A DNA stretch of 64,000 bases from NCBI GenBank assembly GCA_965644495.1, contig CBFFSA010000011.1, forward strand, positions 372,001 to 436,000, read 5' to 3'. A program made the position numbers and the translations under genes. Positions 5,024 to 44,300 of the stretch are shown one piece after another. The notes beneath the pieces were generated by a model. That model made no database searches. It was not told where the DNA came from and saw nothing but the letters and a program-made list of their open reading frames with translations. The stretch comes from Perkinsela sp. CCAP 1560/9. Its lineage: Eukaryota > Protista > Euglenozoa: Kinetoplastea. Each line of letters starts with the position of its first letter. The stretch's first letter is position 1.

Positions 5024-5392
5024 ATGCTGTGGTCGGTAGTGCAATCAGTCTTCGGTTGGTACGATGTGGCGAATGGGAACCCAAAAGAGATTCCTGTAAA
5101 TTACGTCTTCTCCAACGGATATCACAGTTCTCAGCCCATAGCTGTTTCGAATACTGTCCCGACACAACTTCGTACCTTTCCACGAACTCCCAGTCTTGCG
5201 CGTTCTTCGTCGCTCTTTACACTTGAACGACAACCTTCTACGGGACTCTTGCATTCACCCCTCCCTCTGGCACCCGGGGAGAGTTACCTGACCCCCCACC
5301 GTTACTTGTGGTTTTGTTATGGATCATACGTGCTGCTTTCGCTTTTTGCAATGCTTTTCATTGCATTTGTGCGGAACTTGTTTTTTGGATAA
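5024..5392 (+). CDS. Small hypothetical protein with a C-terminal hydrophobic (putative TM) segment
   Basis: 122-aa ATG ORF on the coding strand with hydrophobic tail YVLLSLFAMLFIAFV. Confidence 0.4.
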   Translation: MLWSVVQSVFGWYDVANGNPKEIPVNYVFSNGYHSSQPIAVSNTVPTQLRTFPRTPSLARSSSLFTLERQPSTGLLHSPLPLAPGESYLTPHRYLWFCYGSYVLLSLFAMLFIAFVRNLFFG

Positions 5393-5574
5393 GGGACGCC
5401 TTGGGTTATCATTCAGAAACCTTTGTTACTTAAATCCTTCGGTGGCTTCACAGGGATTTTATTGGAGCGAAGGAGAAGCGCATTTTTCGTAATAAAGATG
5501 TATATGATACGACTATATATATTGTACGTATACGGGCTATAAAACCTTTTCTCATTTCCGTTTTTCGATATCCA

Positions 5575-5902
5575 AAACTCATTCTTCCTCCGGATGGTCA
5601 CTGGCAAACCAAACGCTTCACAGACAGATTTGGAAGTTTCGAGACGGACGTCCTCTACCAGTTTCCGCTTGTCCAAGTCGGCACAACGCGTTGTTTCCAA
5701 CCTCTGGGTCGACCAATCTTACGTCATCACGGCTTACCCAAGAGGTGTAAGCCGTGCAAGGGAGCTGGTTCCCTAAGGGGGGTCGGTCTTCCGAGTACTG
5801 GCCAAGACGGATCTCGACCCAGCCTCTTAGAGTGAGGCCACCAGGTATTATGCGGGAGGCGAGAGTCGAGGTTGCCGTCTGCTTCAAGTTCTTGCCCACT
5901 TA
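5575..5902 (-). repeat. SINE-like dispersed repeat, copy 1 (5'-truncated)
   Basis: Reverse complement aligns over about 300 bp with 45800-46155 (e.g. GGCCTCACTCTAA, GGGAACCAGCTCCCTT, CCTCTTGGGTAAGCCGTG, CAAGCGGAAACTGGTAGAGGACGTC, CTTCCAAATCTGTCTGTGAAG, TTGCCAGTGACCATCCGGAG). Confidence 0.8.
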
Positions 5903-5905
5903 CTT

Positions 5906-6030
5906 GAGGGGCCGCGGGTGGGGGTCAAAACGAGATCATGATACACGAAAAAGACCGAATAATAACCACTCACGCGCGAAATACTTTTTTATGTAGTCGT
6001 GAAATCACGCGAGATCATACTTAATCAAGA
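5906..6030. mobile_element. Partial copy of the GAGGGG(C/T)-terminated MITE family seen at 19049
   Basis: Starts GAGGGGCCGCGGGT and contains CGAGATCA(T/C) subterminal repeats like 19049-19116. Confidence 0.5.
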
Positions 6031-6123
6031 GCTGACGTGAATGAAAGTACTATGAAAGTAATATGTAGACGCGTCCTTGATCTCACAAAATTGTTTCAGA
6101 ATATTACATTGTAACTGCTTCAA

Positions 6124-7014
6124 TTGTATCTAGCAGACTTTGACTGGTTTCGCTTCCTCTTTGTCCATTCGATGCACTTAATCCCCACTCCAGATATTCC
6201 ACGTGTGGTACGCGCGGGTAAGGTACGTGGAAATCTTGCTCAGGAATATCAACTGGAACGATGTGTACATAATCTTACACAGCGGCACCAGTCCTGGACT
6301 TCAGAGACCCCTGCTTGTATGTGGTACGGTGTGAGTTGTCGCCACGGGGATGTTTATGTTATTGAATGGAATCATGAAAAACTACGAGGCATACTTGACT
6401 TCTCGGCCTTACCTGTCTCCGCTGTGGGTTTCCAGTGTAAAGAAAATCATCTTACGGGTCCCCTTTCCCTCGTTGAATTTCCTCCTTCTCTTTTAGAACT
6501 TAACGTTGCCGTTAATCAGCTCTCAGGTGGTTTAGACATGGGAGAACTTTGGTCAAAGATTACATTCTTTGAGGCGCAGGTAAATACAATGTCGGGACTG
6601 TTGGATTTTACACAAATACCTCCCGATTTGTGGGAAATGCGTCTTGCATGGAATGGATTCTATGGTAATTTAGATTTCACAACTTATCGGATACCGCGAA
6701 ATCTGAGAGTTTTGGATCTTTCACAGAATAAATTTCGTGGCACGCTTTGCTTGAAAGGCTTATGGGCGCCCGATCTTCAATTATCAGTGCAGGGCAATTC
6801 CTTGATTAAACATTTTGATGTCAGACAAGTGAATATCGCTCTGCTTACCGTAGACAGAAAAATGAAGTTGCTTGATGTCCCCCGCTTCTCACCAGTAGTT
6901 ATAAAGTACGTCCCCCGCAGTAAATCACGACCGACTTCAAGATCTATATCTACTGATCCTCATGGCCTGTCAAAACGAACGTGCATGTCAGTTGCATGTC
7001 TACTCTATGTATGA
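6124..7014 (+). CDS. Leucine-rich repeat protein (LRRNT cap plus LxxNxLxGxLDLxxLP repeats)
   Basis: W..ETPACMWYGVSC cap; repeats such as LDLSQNKFRG; close paralogue of 8429-9280; the real start may be a downstream ATG. Confidence 0.8.
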   Translation: MYLADFDWFRFLFVHSMHLIPTPDIPRVVRAGKVRGNLAQEYQLERCVHNLTQRHQSWTSETPACMWYGVSCRHGDVYVIEWNHEKLRGILDFSALPVSAVGFQCKENHLTGPLSLVEFPPSLLELNVAVNQLSGGLDMGELWSKITFFEAQVNTMSGLLDFTQIPPDLWEMRLAWNGFYGNLDFTTYRIPRNLRVLDLSQNKFRGTLCLKGLWAPDLQLSVQGNSLIKHFDVRQVNIALLTVDRKMKLLDVPRFSPVVIKYVPRSKSRPTSRSISTDPHGLSKRTCMSVACLLYV

Positions 7015-9280: not shown

Positions 9281-9846
9281 GAGTTCGTATAGTTTGCGTG
9301 TACAGTATTAGTAAATTTGGTTAGACTGAAGCAATGTGAATACAATGTCTTGTAAAAATTATAATCGTCTTTATAATCGTTTTGTAATCTTTATAATCGT
9401 TCCTCTAGTTTTGCCTAGTTTTTGGACCCAGAGAGCACAAAGTTGTGTCTTTTTGTGTACCAACCTTTTTCTGTCCACCGTCTTCCATGATCAGTTTGAA
9501 TTGCATTTTTTCATTTCTCTTAATATTTTCACTGTTTTTGTTCACTTTTTTTGCAATAATCGAGGGTAGAGCAGTAGTTATACAACAACTGCAATGCATA
9601 AGGCATATTGATAATGCATAAGGATTGCCTTTTACACAGCCTCACGTAGACCATTCTGATCCTCGGGCTCAAAAAAATATCAGCCTTAAAAATACCTGAT
9701 TTCCTCTAGTTATAAAAACGAATGATTTTCTCCTATGGAAAACACTGCGATCAAAGTACTTTCTCACGAGAACGAGAACTCACGAATGTATCAAAATTAA
9801 GCAAAACCGAATAAAAGTTTAATCTTTAGAATTACATGACGCAGAC

Positions 9847-11473
9847 TGAGGGAGTTGCTATGCCCTGTCCATGGTATCGTGTTCAGGGGAACAGCAATCC
9901 CCCATTATCTCGGCGTAGTAAACACGCCTTGGCTTGCCTGGCACCACGATTGCCGAAAAAAAAAATTCGGTTCATTTCGCAGCCCAGTTGCTTCCCACTT
10001 AAGGGGCCCGCTCCCACAACCGAGTGATCTCCCCGGCAGCACGGTTTTACCCATGCGTCGAGAAGGCTGGGGTGTGAGACCAGGGTGCATTAGTAGAAAA
10101 TTTTCGGAAGAAGAAATACGGAGATTTTACTGCATAATGGCGTAGAAAACTTTGAGTGCAATAGAACAAAGGGTTGGCGTAAACCTTTGGTTAACGTTTT
10201 TTCTTTTGGGGGGATTTACTTTCTTTGCCATTCCTCATGCTATCAACTCATAAATTTTACCAATTACTCTAGATTCGTATATTTGTTTCCTCCAGTTACG
10301 CTTTCCATAATTCTTACATAGGGTCTACATGTACATCGCCAGCTCTTAGAGCTGAGTTCAGGAGTGCTTCTTTTCTGTCATATTTATGCTCTTCTCGAGT
10401 CAACCCGTCCGCTGGGTTTTCTTTAGATTTAATATGGAAAATTCGAAAAGAATGTCCATGTTTCCCTATCTGTTCATCCATTTCCGTGATCTCATTACAC
10501 ATCGATCTCGTAACTGATGTACGCCCCGATTCTGATGGTATTTCACTCTGGTGAAACCAGTGTCACATATCAGCGGATAAAAAGTTTACGTTGGGGAAAT
10601 TCTCTATTACATGGATAATTTCAGCGATAGCTGGAAAATTCAAGCAAGGAGGGCGATTGCACATCTCATTTGGTGGTGTTCCATCCGCAATACTTCTTGA
10701 CAATTCCTCCGCTTTTGGTACCTCAAAGTAACGTAAATATAAACGTGATGATGATGATCGAGAGTCGTGTGCCACACGTAGCACCCCGCATTCCACGAGT
10801 TCTAATAAATGTTGTAACCAAACCCCGGAGGATAGTTTCCTTATTTTCCCGTGAAAAGGGGGACAATTTATCTATTCAATAAAATTTTGGGTACTTTTCA
10901 ATGCCGTGCAACATTTGATACCCCATGGTAAACCATGTTTTAGGTGTGTTGATGTAAAGAAACCAAGTTGTTCCTTCAGTATTTATGATGAATCTTCGTT
11001 AACAAAGAATTCGGGTATAAATGCATCAAGCAAAGCAACCGTTGCTTTTTTTTCTAGTTCTCTTTTTTTTACTCCACCGAATAAGCACTAACGCGTTCAC
11101 TATCGTCGGTCTGAATTTCTGATTCAATATTCCTACCAGGCGAGATATCCTGAAAAGCCGTATTCCGAGCGTCAACCCGAGACGTCCGGTGTGTGCCTCG
11201 ATACTTCCATATGGGAGGATCTATAACGCACGAACAATACTCCCCCCCCCCCTTTGTTTTCTCTCCCCCGAACACTCCATATTTTTCAACTTCAAATCTT
11301 CTTAGGGGGGAGGACTCCCGTTAACATGCCTCAAGTGAGGATTAAGGAACTATTTCTTTTTTTTCGGCAATCGTAGTGCCAGGCAAGCCAAGGCGTGTTT
11401 ACTACGCCGAGATAATGGGGAGTTGCTGTTCCCCTGAACATGATACCATGGACAGGGCATAGCAACTCCCTCA
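9847..11473 (-). mobile_element. Internally deleted retroelement (DIRS/VIPER-like RT-RNase H) bounded by about 118-bp inverted terminal repeats
   Basis: 9847-9965 is the near-perfect reverse complement of 11355-11473; the interior carries RT and RNase H fragments on the minus strand. Confidence 0.75.
10314..10815 (-). pseudogene. Reverse transcriptase N-terminal motifs fused by deletion to an RNase H C-terminus
   Basis: One frame reads LLELVECGVL...YFEVPKAEELSRSIADG...N...FLSADM*HWFHQ..IP (RT F.VPK..R.I.D..N and D...F.Q motifs), then HIKSKENPADGLTR (RNase H end motif). The YxDD region is missing. Confidence 0.78.
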
Positions 11474-12576
11474 TTATCACTCCTTCGTAAGCACCATGTT
11501 ACCGGGACCAAGCCCTAGGTGCCAGGCATGCCATAGCACGTCACAACTTCCCACCCTCTCCCTTCTGTTTTTATTCTGTTTTCACTTCATTAAAAAAACA
11601 TGCTGGAGAGGAGGATGTATAGCGCAAATGGAACGGCAAGTGTGCCCCGAAGGACACGGAGCCCATGGGCCTCCCAGCACGAATGCTGGGGCGGTGGTAC
11701 CCCGAAGGGTACGGAGCCCATGGGCCTCGTTACAGAGGATGTATAAATGCAACGGCAAGTGTGCCCCGAAGGACACGGAGCCCATGGGCCTCCCAGCACG
11801 AATGCTGGGGCGGCGGTACCCCGAAGGGTACGGAGCCCATGGGCCTCGTCACAGAGGATGTATAAATGCAACGGCAAGTGTGCCCCGAAGGACACGGAGC
11901 CCATGGGCCTCCCAGCACGAATGCTGGGGCGGTGGTACCCCGAAGGGTACGGAGCCCATGGGCCTCGTTACAGAGGATGTATAAATGCAACGGCAAGTGT
12001 GCCCCGAAGGACACGGAGCCCATGGGCCTCCCAGCACGAATGCTGGGGCGGTGGTACCCCGAAGGGTACGGAGCCCATGGGCCTCGTCACAGAGGATGTA
12101 TAAATGCAACGGCAAGTGTGCCCCGAAGGACACGGAGCCCATGGGCCTCCCAGCACGAATGCTGGGGCGGTGGTACCCCGAAGGGTACGGAGCCCATGGG
12201 CCTCGTTACAGAGGATGTATAAATGCAATGGCAAGTGTGCCCCGAAGGACACGGAGCCCATGGGCCTCCCTGCACGAATGCTGGGGCGGTGGTACCCCGA
12301 AGGGTACGGAGCCCATGGGCCTCGTTACAGAGGATGAAGTACTGCCAGGCCGGGACCAAGCGAATTGATGTGTGACATTTTCAGGCGTGTAAGATTGTTT
12401 AGTTAAATGGAGCTAAATGTAGTAGTTATACTGGACACTAGAAACAAGTAATTCAATTATATTTAGTTTATAATCGTGCTATAGATGTATTGAAATCTTC
12501 ACCCTCACACTCCGCCGAATATGGCGGTGCCGGGCTTGGGACCGGTAACAAGCGTGTTTACGAAGGAGTGATAATG
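11472..12576. mobile_element. Non-coding element with 44/45-bp imperfect TIRs enclosing a 119-bp tandem array
   Basis: 11472-11515 CATTATCACTCCTTCGTAAGCACCATGTTACCGGGACCAAGCCC versus the reverse complement of 12532-12576 CATTATCACTCCTTCGTAAACACGCTTGTTACCGGTCCCAAGCCC (first 19 nt identical). Confidence 0.75.
11611..12336 (-). repeat. Tandem array, 6 x 119 bp, each unit a diverged dimer of structured half-units
   Basis: Units start at about 11611, 11734, 11853, 11972, 12091 and 12210; GGAGCCCATGGGCCTC occurs 12 times; the minus strand folds into three UUCG hairpins per unit. Confidence 0.95.
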
Positions 12577-12706
12577 TATATTTCATAAAAAGTGTATGAT
12601 TTTGTTTTTACCGATCAAAATTAGCGTTCTAAACGGAATTACATATGTAGATGGCAAGAAGTATGACATACCAGAAAGATAGCACGCGACACCTTTAGTT
12701 CTTTTC

Positions 12707-14761
12707 ATGTACCGCGCGTTTTCCATTACTCACAAGTCCTGGTCTTCCTCCTGCGGGACGACTTCCTCACATGCGTCCAGTCGATACCACCTCACGGGTA
12801 TGGCACAGCCCTTAGCCAAAATTCTACACGCCAAAGCTACCCTTCATCGTGAAAGGATTCAAAAACTACGAAAGGAGAAGGGCAATGAGAGTCTGGGACC
12901 CATCACAGTTGACTCGTTGTATAATGGCGCACGTGGGCTCACGTGTCTTCCCCATGAGCCTTCGACGTTGGACCCTCTGGAGGGCATTCGCTACCGTGGT
13001 ATGAGCCTTGCGGCGTGCCGAAACAAACTGCTAGATTGCTCCGAGATTGGCACCGAGCCGCGGCCGGAGGCGTTGTTCTGGCTCCTGCTCACAGGAGAAC
13101 TCCCCCATGCGGATGAGCTGCGTGAGCTCTCTGCGGATCTCCACAGGCGAAGCACCGAAAGTACCACACTACCCTCGGTGCTGTCCTTTCTCGAGACCCT
13201 CCCTCGCTCCATGCCCCCGATCACACAACTCACCATCGCACTGCTCGCGCTCCAACCCCACTCCTTACTCGCGCTCGCCCAAACGGAGGGCAAAGCCACC
13301 AAACGAAACACCCCCGATTTCATGCTCGAGGACGCCCTTAACTGTGTGGCCTGGGTCCCCGTCCTGGCCGCCGCGATCTACCGCAGGCACTGTGCTCCTG
13401 TGGATTCCAACGACACCCTCCCCCCTTCCGAACCAACCCACAACATCTCCTCAACAGAATCTCCCCTCTTCGAGACCACACCCTATTCTATTTCAAACCG
13501 TGAAACTCATGAGGGGGAAACCCATGAGGGTAACAACAATAACCATACGAACAACGCTCATCCTCTAAACCCCTTCCCCCCCTTATCCCACCCACGACCT
13601 CAAAATCCTCAAGACCACAACTCTCTTCACCTTCACGACAACACCTTGGAGAGCTCACAAAACACACGACCCACGAGTCGTGCTCCAAATTCAAAGTCGG
13701 CTCTCTCCTCCGATCCCTCTTTGGGGTCTTCTTGTGAGTCTTCTGGTGAGTCTTCTGGTGAGTCTTGTGAGTCTTCCGAGGCTCTGGGCTCGGACTGGAC
13801 CGCGGCCTTTGCCCGTGGACTCTCTCTCCACGGTTCTGGGGCCCACGACCTGCTCCGGCTCTTCCTCTTCGTCCACGCCTGCCACGACGGGGGGAGTCTC
13901 TCCACCCATGTGGCCTCGATGGTCGGGGGGGCGCGGGGGGATGTGTTTCTGTGTCTCTCCAGCGCCTGTGCCGCCCTGGGCGCCCCCGGGCACGGGGGGA
14001 ACATGGCGCAGGGGCTGGAGTTTTTACACGCCCTGCAGTGTACGTTGCGGAGGAAGAATAGAGGGGTTGGAGGGGGAGGTTTAGAGGTTGGGGGATTTGC
14101 CCCGCATTCGGCTACGAAGGGGGTAAATGCCTCCATCTCTTCTTCCTCCTCTTCTTCCCCTCTTTCTTTTTGTTCCTCTTCTTCCTCTTCTTCTTCTGTT
14201 TCCGGGGACGAGGGTCTCCGTTCGATTCTCTCCGAACTCACGTGGGAGTATTACCACAACGGAGCGGACCACATCCCCGGCTACGGTCATGCGGTGCTTC
14301 GAGGCCCCGATCCGCGATACGATCTGCTCTATCGCTTCGCCTCGCAGCACTGTGGGGGTAACCCCTACTTTCGCATTCTCCAGCAGATCCACCCGATCAT
14401 GCCGGAGGTGTTAGCGCGGCATGGGCGCGGGGGTAATCCGCATGCAACATCGGATGCCATCTCGGGGCTGTTGTTGGCCCATTACGGGATGAGGGGAAGG
14501 CAGTCGTTGTCTTCTTCATCTTTTTCTTCATCTTCTTCTTTTATTCACTTCTTTCCCGTGCTGTTGGCCGTAAGCCGACAGCTCGGGATTGTGAGTGGGT
14601 TGGTTTGGGACCGCATGGGTCGACGCCCGGTGGAACGGCCGCGGTCGGTGTCGGTGGGGGAGCTGGGGCGGCGGTTTCAAATCACAGAGAGGGGGGAGGG
14701 GAAAATGGGGCAGAGGGGGAAAATGGGGGAGAAAGGGGAGAGGAGGGAGAAAGAGGGGTAG
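12707..14761 (+). CDS. Divergent eukaryote-type citrate synthase with low-complexity insertions
   Basis: LGPITVDSLYNGARG, EPSTLDPLEGIRYRG, PEALFWLLLTGE, HACHDGGSLSTH, PGHG, IPGYGHAVLRGPDPRY, DAISG, PVERPRS. Confidence 0.85.
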   Translation: MYRAFSITHKSWSSSCGTTSSHASSRYHLTGMAQPLAKILHAKATLHRERIQKLRKEKGNESLGPITVDSLYNGARGLTCLPHEPSTLDPLEGIRYRGMSLAACRNKLLDCSEIGTEPRPEALFWLLLTGELPHADELRELSADLHRRSTESTTLPSVLSFLETLPRSMPPITQLTIALLALQPHSLLALAQTEGKATKRNTPDFMLEDALNCVAWVPVLAAAIYRRHCAPVDSNDTLPPSEPTHNISSTESPLFETTPYSISNRETHEGETHEGNNNNHTNNAHPLNPFPPLSHPRPQNPQDHNSLHLHDNTLESSQNTRPTSRAPNSKSALSSDPSLGSSCESSGESSGESCESSEALGSDWTAAFARGLSLHGSGAHDLLRLFLFVHACHDGGSLSTHVASMVGGARGDVFLCLSSACAALGAPGHGGNMAQGLEFLHALQCTLRRKNRGVGGGGLEVGGFAPHSATKGVNASISSSSSSSPLSFCSSSSSSSSVSGDEGLRSILSELTWEYYHNGADHIPGYGHAVLRGPDPRYDLLYRFASQHCGGNPYFRILQQIHPIMPEVLARHGRGGNPHATSDAISGLLLAHYGMRGRQSLSSSSFSSSSSFIHFFPVLLAVSRQLGIVSGLVWDRMGRRPVERPRSVSVGELGRRFQITERGEGKMGQRGKMGEKGERREKEG

Positions 14762-44155: not shown

Positions 44156-44300
44156 GGTCGGTTGCAGTGCGCCCCTCCGGCTGCGTAAAGAGATGGTGAG
44201 TTGCCTGGACCACCTCTACCGACTGGGACCGAGTCGGTTGCAGTACGCCCCTCCGGCTGCGTAAAGAGAGGGCGAGTTGCCTGGACCCCCTCTACCGACA
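44156..44300. repeat. Two-copy tandem repeat, 77-bp period
   Basis: GTCGGTTGCAGT(G/A)CGCCCCTCCGGCTGCGTAAAGAGA...GAGTTGCCTGGACC(A/C)CCTCTACCGAC occurs twice. Confidence 0.85.

Follow-up and report, generated by a model that had tools for sequence, protein, structure and literature searches.

The window analysed here is a 64,000-nt stretch of the Perkinsela sp. CCAP 1560/9 assembly (contig CBFFSA010000011.1, positions 372,001 to 436,000), and positions given without a locus name refer to it. On its minus strand, positions 9847-12576 hold a 2.73-kb mobile element, a non-autonomous DIRS-like retrotransposon whose sense strand is the window minus strand; dispersed copies end at both of these limits. 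Read in the sense direction, the element comprises its 5′ end, a twister-like motif, approximately 160 nt, a hairpin array, approximately 70 nt, an internal complementary region, a dead reverse-transcriptase (RT) remnant and the 3′ end. The array, at 11611-12336 on the minus strand, consists of six units of 119 nt, or 12 half-units of 55 or 64 nt. An earlier note on this DNA, made from the letters alone, had described the array and had read it as selected single-stranded structure, with a protein-binding scaffold, a satellite or viroid-like multimer and an unknown ribozyme as the options.

Structure of the tandem array

The array was called by TRF at 11626-12336, with a period of 119, 6.0 copies, 98% matches and zero indels; a partial first unit pushes its start to about 11611. 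Half-unit parsing showed that every 119-nt unit of the minus strand is made up of a 55-nt half and a 64-nt half, and the two methods together reproduced the repeat that had been described in the earlier note. Both half-units open with one identical 15-nt core containing the palindrome GCCCAUGGGC, so the 10-nt palindrome that the note had placed in an invariant core is present in both halves. The CATCCTC repeat is present at both ends of the array. A further GC-rich tandem repeat was found elsewhere in the window, at 44157-44299 (76-nt unit, 1.9 copies, 94% matches).

In a representative unit (12085-12203, minus strand) the first core (12189-12203) is followed by hairpin 1 (12173-12188) and hairpin 2 (12149-12166), and the second core (12134-12148) by hairpin 3 (12118-12133) and hairpin 4 (12085-12111), all on the minus strand. 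The hairpins of one half-unit are GUACCC-UUCG-GGGUAC and CCCAGCA-UUCG-UGCUGGG, and those of the other are GUGUCC-UUCG-GGGCAC and CGUUGCA-(13 nt)-UGUAACG, that is, four hairpins per unit, three of them with UUCG loops, as the note had written them. Two of the three loops are C(UUCG)G, with a C-G closing pair on a Watson-Crick stem, and are of the cUUCGg type; the third is A(UUCG)U, closed by A-U. A variant of the fourth hairpin, UGUAACG or UGUGACG, alternates through five successive units, which generates a 238-bp higher-order repeat and replaces U-A by U-G. In the third and fourth hairpins, the internal G-U pairs can form on the minus strand only. Both the alternation and the strand specificity of the wobbles had been claimed before, and both were borne out.

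The minimum free energy fold of a single unit on the minus strand (-58.7 kcal/mol, z -4.7, the structure accounting for 29% of the ensemble) consisted of the hairpins proposed in the note together with a 12-bp helix joining the two palindromic cores. The plus strand gave -53.0 kcal/mol, z -2.8 and a diffuse ensemble. Folds of two units gave z-scores of -5.8 for the minus strand versus -4.1 for the plus strand.

A search of the whole window against Rfam returned zero matches at gathering score. In the region 9800-12650, no Rfam family, and hence no ribozyme family, was found inside the array (11611-12336) at E values up to 10. One match to mir-202, at 11565-11636 (15.9 bits, E 5.3), is at chance level and merely touches the edge of the array. 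A coding role for the array was also considered and rejected, since 119 cannot be divided by 3 and the frames that cross the array are open just for lack of stops.

The array lies in a recently mobile DIRS-like element

The 5′ terminus of the element in the sense direction (12532-12576, minus strand) has an inverted copy at 11472-11515, within the internal complementary region, and the 3′ terminus (9847-9960, minus strand) has an inverted copy at 11360-11473. An inverted-repeat search likewise identified the left end, 9847-9940, as an inverted copy of 11380-11473. Over its whole length (11360-11515), the internal complementary region corresponds at 148 of 157 positions to the right and left ends, joined in that order and reverse-complemented. 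The element thus has the hallmark of the DIRS order, inverted termini together with an internal region complementary to the joined ends. The tip of this region forms a hairpin at 11418-11470 with a 16-bp stem (88% complementary), and the block 11380-11527 is, as a whole, a long imperfect palindrome.

No open frame for RT, RNase H or tyrosine recombinase is present in the window copy. What is left is a decayed RT remnant without an open frame at 10389-10739 on the minus strand, recognised by its nucleotide match to the RT open reading frame (ORF) of a related locus, L044; element positions 1845-1964 and 2060-2195 match that ORF at 69-70%. The window element derives from a DIRS-like retrotransposon and is itself non-autonomous or decayed.

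In contigs of X2 and X3, two further samples from this organism, position 9846 is joined straight to 12575, with the letters TG shared. Both samples carry an empty site; the precise absence of the element from them means that the insertion is polymorphic and, consequently, that the family has been active recently. Consistent with DIRS-like mobility, the element occurs at at least nine dispersed loci, and insertion was without a long target duplication, only two letters being shared. Insertion linked to tRNA genes was considered and rejected, as there was no tRNA gene near the window copy or near twelve related loci.

The 5′ head of the element carries the twister-like motif (12497-12565, minus strand), with a predicted cut 17 nt from the terminus. 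In the window copy the motif is detected as a weak, partial Rfam match to Twister-P5 at 12530-12561 (17.9 bits, E 1.5, against a gathering score of 37.6). Thirteen of 20 related loci gave, at their heads, full-length twister-P1 matches with a conserved core, invariably on the strand of the array; these scored 24-36 bits, below the gathering score of 67.2. The gathering score is therefore reached neither in the window copy nor in the relatives; the core is conserved, and a search for the conserved 16-nt twister core gave 62 occurrences in the genome versus 0 for the control. Judged by its sequence, the head is twister-like and a putative ribozyme. It is the single ribozyme-like motif of the element and sits outside the array. 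The twister-like head, together with the ORFs of the relatives, identifies the minus strand as the sense strand of the element, and an RNA carrying the hairpins is therefore to be expected.

A citrate-synthase-like gene (12707-14761, Pfam Citrate_synt, E 8e-41) has its ATG 131 nt away from the 5′ head of the element, the two being divergently arranged across the gap 12577-12707. Antisense transcription upstream of the promoter of this gene could feed the ribozyme-headed element.

Distribution of the 119-nt unit

Arrays of the 119-nt unit were found at nine places in the 21-Mb genome, every one of them inside a copy of this dispersed element. The 12-nt core has 71 exact copies, all within eight arrays, and the reversed-pattern control gave 0; the ninth array, which is decayed and lies on C5, is additional to the eight that hold exact cores. 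The number of units per array varies from 1 to 12 among the insertions, and half-unit length is not conserved, ranging from 54 to 87 nt among the genomic copies. Two elements, L049 and L054, have a single unit, which shows that multiplicity is not required. At L055 a lone decayed unit was found, in which the palindrome is lost.

The largest array of the family, at L052 (G000:C1:3865469-3866972), has 12 units, with a 314-bp higher-order block repeated three times. Some of its hairpins are chimeric, with the 5′ arm of one half-unit type, the 3′ arm of the other and an A-C mismatch, and this copy is apparently without the twister-bearing end.

Exact-pattern scans of metagenome contigs revealed no relatives outside this genome. 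A search of sequencing runs for the stretch returned DNA-like assemblies only, and the one possible RNA run gave nothing.

Sister families carry other hairpin arrays at the same position

Relatives share both termini and the internal block with the window element at 77-83% identity. Their ORFs, on the strand that corresponds to the window minus strand, have RT, RNase H and tyrosine-recombinase signatures. The Pfam matches (RVT_1, E 4e-5 to 8e-5; RVT_3, E 0.002; Phage_int_SAM_4, E 7e-4; Phage_integrase, E 0.009) were all below the curated cut-offs and were mutually consistent. The coding relatives L043, L044 and L045 and the short derivatives L041, L056, L057, L058 and L059 have a different tandem array on the sense strand at the same spot, which is flanked by the head on one side and the internal complementary region on the other. 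In the coding relatives the array is upstream of the first ORF, whose protein has an arginine/glycine-rich C-terminal tail; in L044 this ORF is at 5359-6402 on the minus strand.

The 78-nt unit of these families comprises halves of 36 and 42 nt, in each of which a UUCG hairpin, GGUCC/GGACU or GGUUC/GAACU, comes after the palindrome CCUCGAGG. In other families a 124-nt unit contains GGUCA-UUCG-UGACU, GGUCUU-UUCG-AAGACU and a relative of the third hairpin of the window unit. Both hairpin types occur together in the 124-nt unit; the unit types therefore share a common descent, which allows comparison between them. An 83-nt unit, in which a long stem encloses three hairpins, and a 31-nt unit whose stem has 7 bp are among the further unit types.

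A survey covered 20 of about 47 further twister-headed loci. A tandem repeat with a period of at least 20, located 150-1400 nt downstream of the head, was present in 12 of the 20, and in all six 78-type loci the array lies at that same distance, 150-1400 nt behind the head. UUCG-loop hairpins with a stem of at least 4 bp were found in the 20 loci 57 times on the sense versus 7 times on the antisense strand, and the repeated ones were all sense.

The 83-nt units (L059:1457-2100, L058:1828-2081, L056:1709-1990 and L065:412-597) form a second array type in the same leaders. They fold in a cloverleaf-like manner, with three short hairpins, including GGUCC-UUU-GGACU, closed off by a long stem. At L073:633-1246 there are nineteen copies of the 31-nt unit, each a 7-bp hairpin with a GAG loop, and this array follows a twister-like head with one changed core letter. 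ORFs of 225-303 amino acids at L044:7192-7869 and L041:957-1923 were rejected as genes, being 78-nt arrays read through; 78 is divisible by 3, and two frames stay open. Two further features were recorded. An ORF for a DDE_Tnp_4 (PIF/Harbinger-type) transposase, on the minus strand at L041:3432-4613, is a nested insertion within a DIRS-like copy. At L077:2106-2230, a 125-nt, near-perfect long hairpin matched a plant miRNA family (E 2e-6, well under gathering score); rather than a miRNA, a small inverted-repeat transposon is its probable identity.

Conservation of the hairpins

Comparison of the two half-units within the 119-nt unit showed that their fixed differences break no pair. In hairpin 1 two pairs differ, both altered on both sides; in hairpin 2 four pairs differ, three of them altered on both sides and one changed from G-C to G-U. 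The earlier observation that the stem sequences differ between halves with the pairing kept therefore amounts to five pairs changed on both sides and one wobble. A similar series was found among the unit types, in which the UUCG-loop hairpins have the arms GGUCC/GGACU, GGUUC/GAACU, GGUCA/UGACU, GGUCA/UGGCU and GGUCUU/AAGACU. In this GGUNN-UUCG-NNACU pattern, C-G, U-A and A-U occur at the two loop-adjacent pairs, there is one extra pair, and UUCG is constant. A fixed, non-palindromic loop with covarying arms is the pattern of a single-stranded hairpin, the opposite of that of a dimeric double-stranded binding site.

Recent copies gave a different result. Among 63 parsed half-units, 7 stem substitutions were pair-keeping versus 9 pair-breaking, and the stems had 0.31 events per site versus 0.17 for the core, loops and linkers. 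Units with broken stems are present in, for example, L047, L051 and L052. The 78-type units gave 5 pair-keeping versus 6 pair-breaking events. The substitutions among recent copies resemble neutral decay after insertion, and are no support for constraint. A formal covariation count over five sequences gave pairing in 96.7% of cells and two-sided changes at 2 pairs; this was not significant, as 44 of 500 shuffles were as good.

The evidence from folding energies was similarly reduced by controls. In 9 of 10 arrays the sense strand had a more favourable folding energy than the antisense strand. After dinucleotide shuffling of each strand, the z-scores of sense and antisense were similar, from which it follows that the folding advantage of the sense strand is mostly one of composition. 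The 78-type array was not more structured than its shuffles (z -0.2). What is left of the strand-specific evidence is a small number of internal G-U pairs, the way the UUCG loops are oriented and the location in a retroelement; the loop orientation could be inherited instead of selected.

Two of the results that the earlier note had named as speaking against selected structure, namely mutations random with respect to the stems and a lack of covariation among other copies, were obtained in part. Randomness was indeed found among recent copies, but not in the fixed differences; close copies added no covariation, and the sister unit types were consistent with it. The claim of selected single-stranded structure is accordingly supported in part; it draws on the old stem differences, which are compensated around a fixed UUCG, and gains nothing from the recent substitutions, which are random with respect to the stems. 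Taken together, the comparisons make the hairpins look maintained, not accidental.

Discussion

Direct observations are the element with its boundaries, its recent movement, the restriction of the unit to this family, the fold and the presence of other hairpin arrays in sister families. The reading that we favour, at a probability of about 0.62, is that the array is a tandem-repeat module in the 5′ leader of a non-autonomous DIRS-like element, and that its hairpins are a selected cis-acting RNA structure, likely a packaging or dimerisation signal. The array is probably a working part of the RNA of the element, and not a viroid or a new ribozyme.

In the proposed mechanism, the element would be transcribed through the array, so that the hairpins would be present in its genomic RNA. 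The module of palindrome and UUCG hairpin would then work in cis as an RNA structure that selection maintains in the active lineage. Its most likely role would be that of a multivalent binding site for the basic-tailed first protein of the element, which in the coding relatives is encoded just downstream. A second role may be RNA-RNA pairing through the palindromes, which would provide a packaging or dimerisation signal. Coding-dead deletion derivatives retain the leader and lose the genes, as would be expected if the leader held cis signals. The unit number is unstable and probably unconstrained in itself, and each copy would decay neutrally once inserted.

A broader and more tentative proposal, which we hold to be less likely than not, is that an entire clade of tyrosine-recombinase retrotransposons with twister heads has tandem modules of palindrome and UUCG hairpin in common as an RNA organ under selection. 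The organ would be a multiplied packaging and dimerisation signal, bound by the first protein; coding-dead parasites, the window element among them, would inflate it and so out-compete their coding partners for this protein.

Three other explanations were weighed against the cis-acting RNA structure. The array might be a neutral, transposon-borne minisatellite, in which slippage, or unequal exchange between the short CATCCTC repeats, duplicated one structured part of the leader; the copies would serve no function, and the hairpins would persist only through the youth of all copies. We regard this as rather improbable. It would account for the CATCCTC repeats at both array ends, for a copy number of 1 to 12, for the 238- and 314-bp higher-order blocks, which are typical of unequal exchange, for substitutions that fall at random with respect to the stems among the copies, and for the single decayed unit alone at L055. 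It leaves unexplained why all fixed stem differences are compensated around a loop that is constantly UUCG, and why a hairpin array occupies the same position and strand in diverged families, the coding ones included. A function at the level of DNA, with the monomers acting as an internal promoter or enhancer, or as double-stranded sites for a recombinase or host factor with the palindromes as dimer sites, appears unlikely. The hairpins keep a non-palindromic 4-nt centre and vary their arms, which is the reverse of a dimeric DNA-binding site, and the internal G-U pairs are sensible on one strand only. The core is found nowhere else in the genome, which argues against a general host factor site, and the palindrome is lost in the diverged L055 unit and differs between unit types. 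Set against these points, the cores are perfect DNA palindromes (GCCCATGGGC in the window units and CCTCGAGG in the 78-type units), the 17 nt upstream of the predicted cut leave no room for an upstream promoter of the element's own, and with composition controlled both strands fold almost equally well.

The small chance that we allow to an autonomous small RNA, a monomer or circle of 55, 64 or 119 nt set free by host nucleases or by a self-cleaving motif of a new kind, is far lower still. Units arranged head to tail, with strong local structure and on the ribozyme-bearing strand, would suit such an RNA, and ribozyme satellites are known; yet no Rfam ribozyme family is found inside the array at E up to 10, the lone ribozyme-like motif lies outside it, half-unit length varies from 54 to 87 nt, single-unit elements exist, and the unit never occurs outside the element. 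The suggestion in the earlier note of a satellite or viroid-like multimer or an unknown ribozyme was not supported, given the same lack of an Rfam match in the array and because the unit is confined to one transposon family with a copy number of 1-12.

Very little is known of the cis RNA signals needed by tyrosine-recombinase retrotransposons. This genome offers diverged, recently mobile families, both coding and non-coding, each with a different hairpin array behind a ribozyme-like head. The series is natural material for the study of RNA recognition, pairing and packaging, and of the competition of non-autonomous elements for machinery. There is also a lesson for annotation, in that a striking "structured satellite" turned out to be transposon sequence and not a free-standing RNA gene.

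Fungal members of the DIRS order have been described (PMC3783388), and the words "tandem" and "hairpin" are absent from that survey. Papers on DIRS elements describe the inverted repeats and the internal complementary region; "tandem repeats" was not found in the DIRS literature searched. The literature search returned no paper linking the twister ribozyme with DIRS, and none linking UUCG, tandem repeats and retrotransposons. Like DIRS-order elements such as DIRS-1 of Dictyostelium, the window element has inverted termini and a block complementary to the joined ends, its relatives carry sub-threshold RT, RNase H and tyrosine-recombinase signatures, and its insertion shares just the 2-nt TG. 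It differs from them in that its internal complementary region is upstream of the ORFs, not beside the 3′ repeat, and in having a twister-like start and hairpin arrays in the leader; the window copy, in addition, is without ORFs.

Repeat arrays inside transposons are common in general. In ribozyme satellites and retrozymes, hammerhead repeats give circular RNAs and every unit has its own ribozyme. The window array resembles retrozymes in that tandem structured units accompany a retroelement and a motif of the small self-cleaving ribozyme kind. It differs in that its one twister-like motif is outside the array and that none of its units matches a ribozyme family. The tandem monomers at the 5′ end of mouse L1 act as promoters at the DNA level and have no tetraloop hairpins. 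As in mouse L1, the window units are present in variable number in a retroelement leader, upstream of the first ORF, and their copy number is insertion-specific; unlike the L1 monomers, they are compact sets of hairpins with conserved UUCG loops and compensated stems.

In the Psi region of murine leukaemia virus, palindromes and paired tetraloop hairpins are packaging and dimerisation signals. The module described here similarly places palindromes, which could pair from one molecule to another, beside very stable tetraloop hairpins, between the 5′ end and the first (Gag-like) ORF, and is retained in coding-dead derivatives. There is no sequence relation to the retroviral leader signals, and the window module is tandemly multiplied; the likeness is one of working principle, drawn by analogy.
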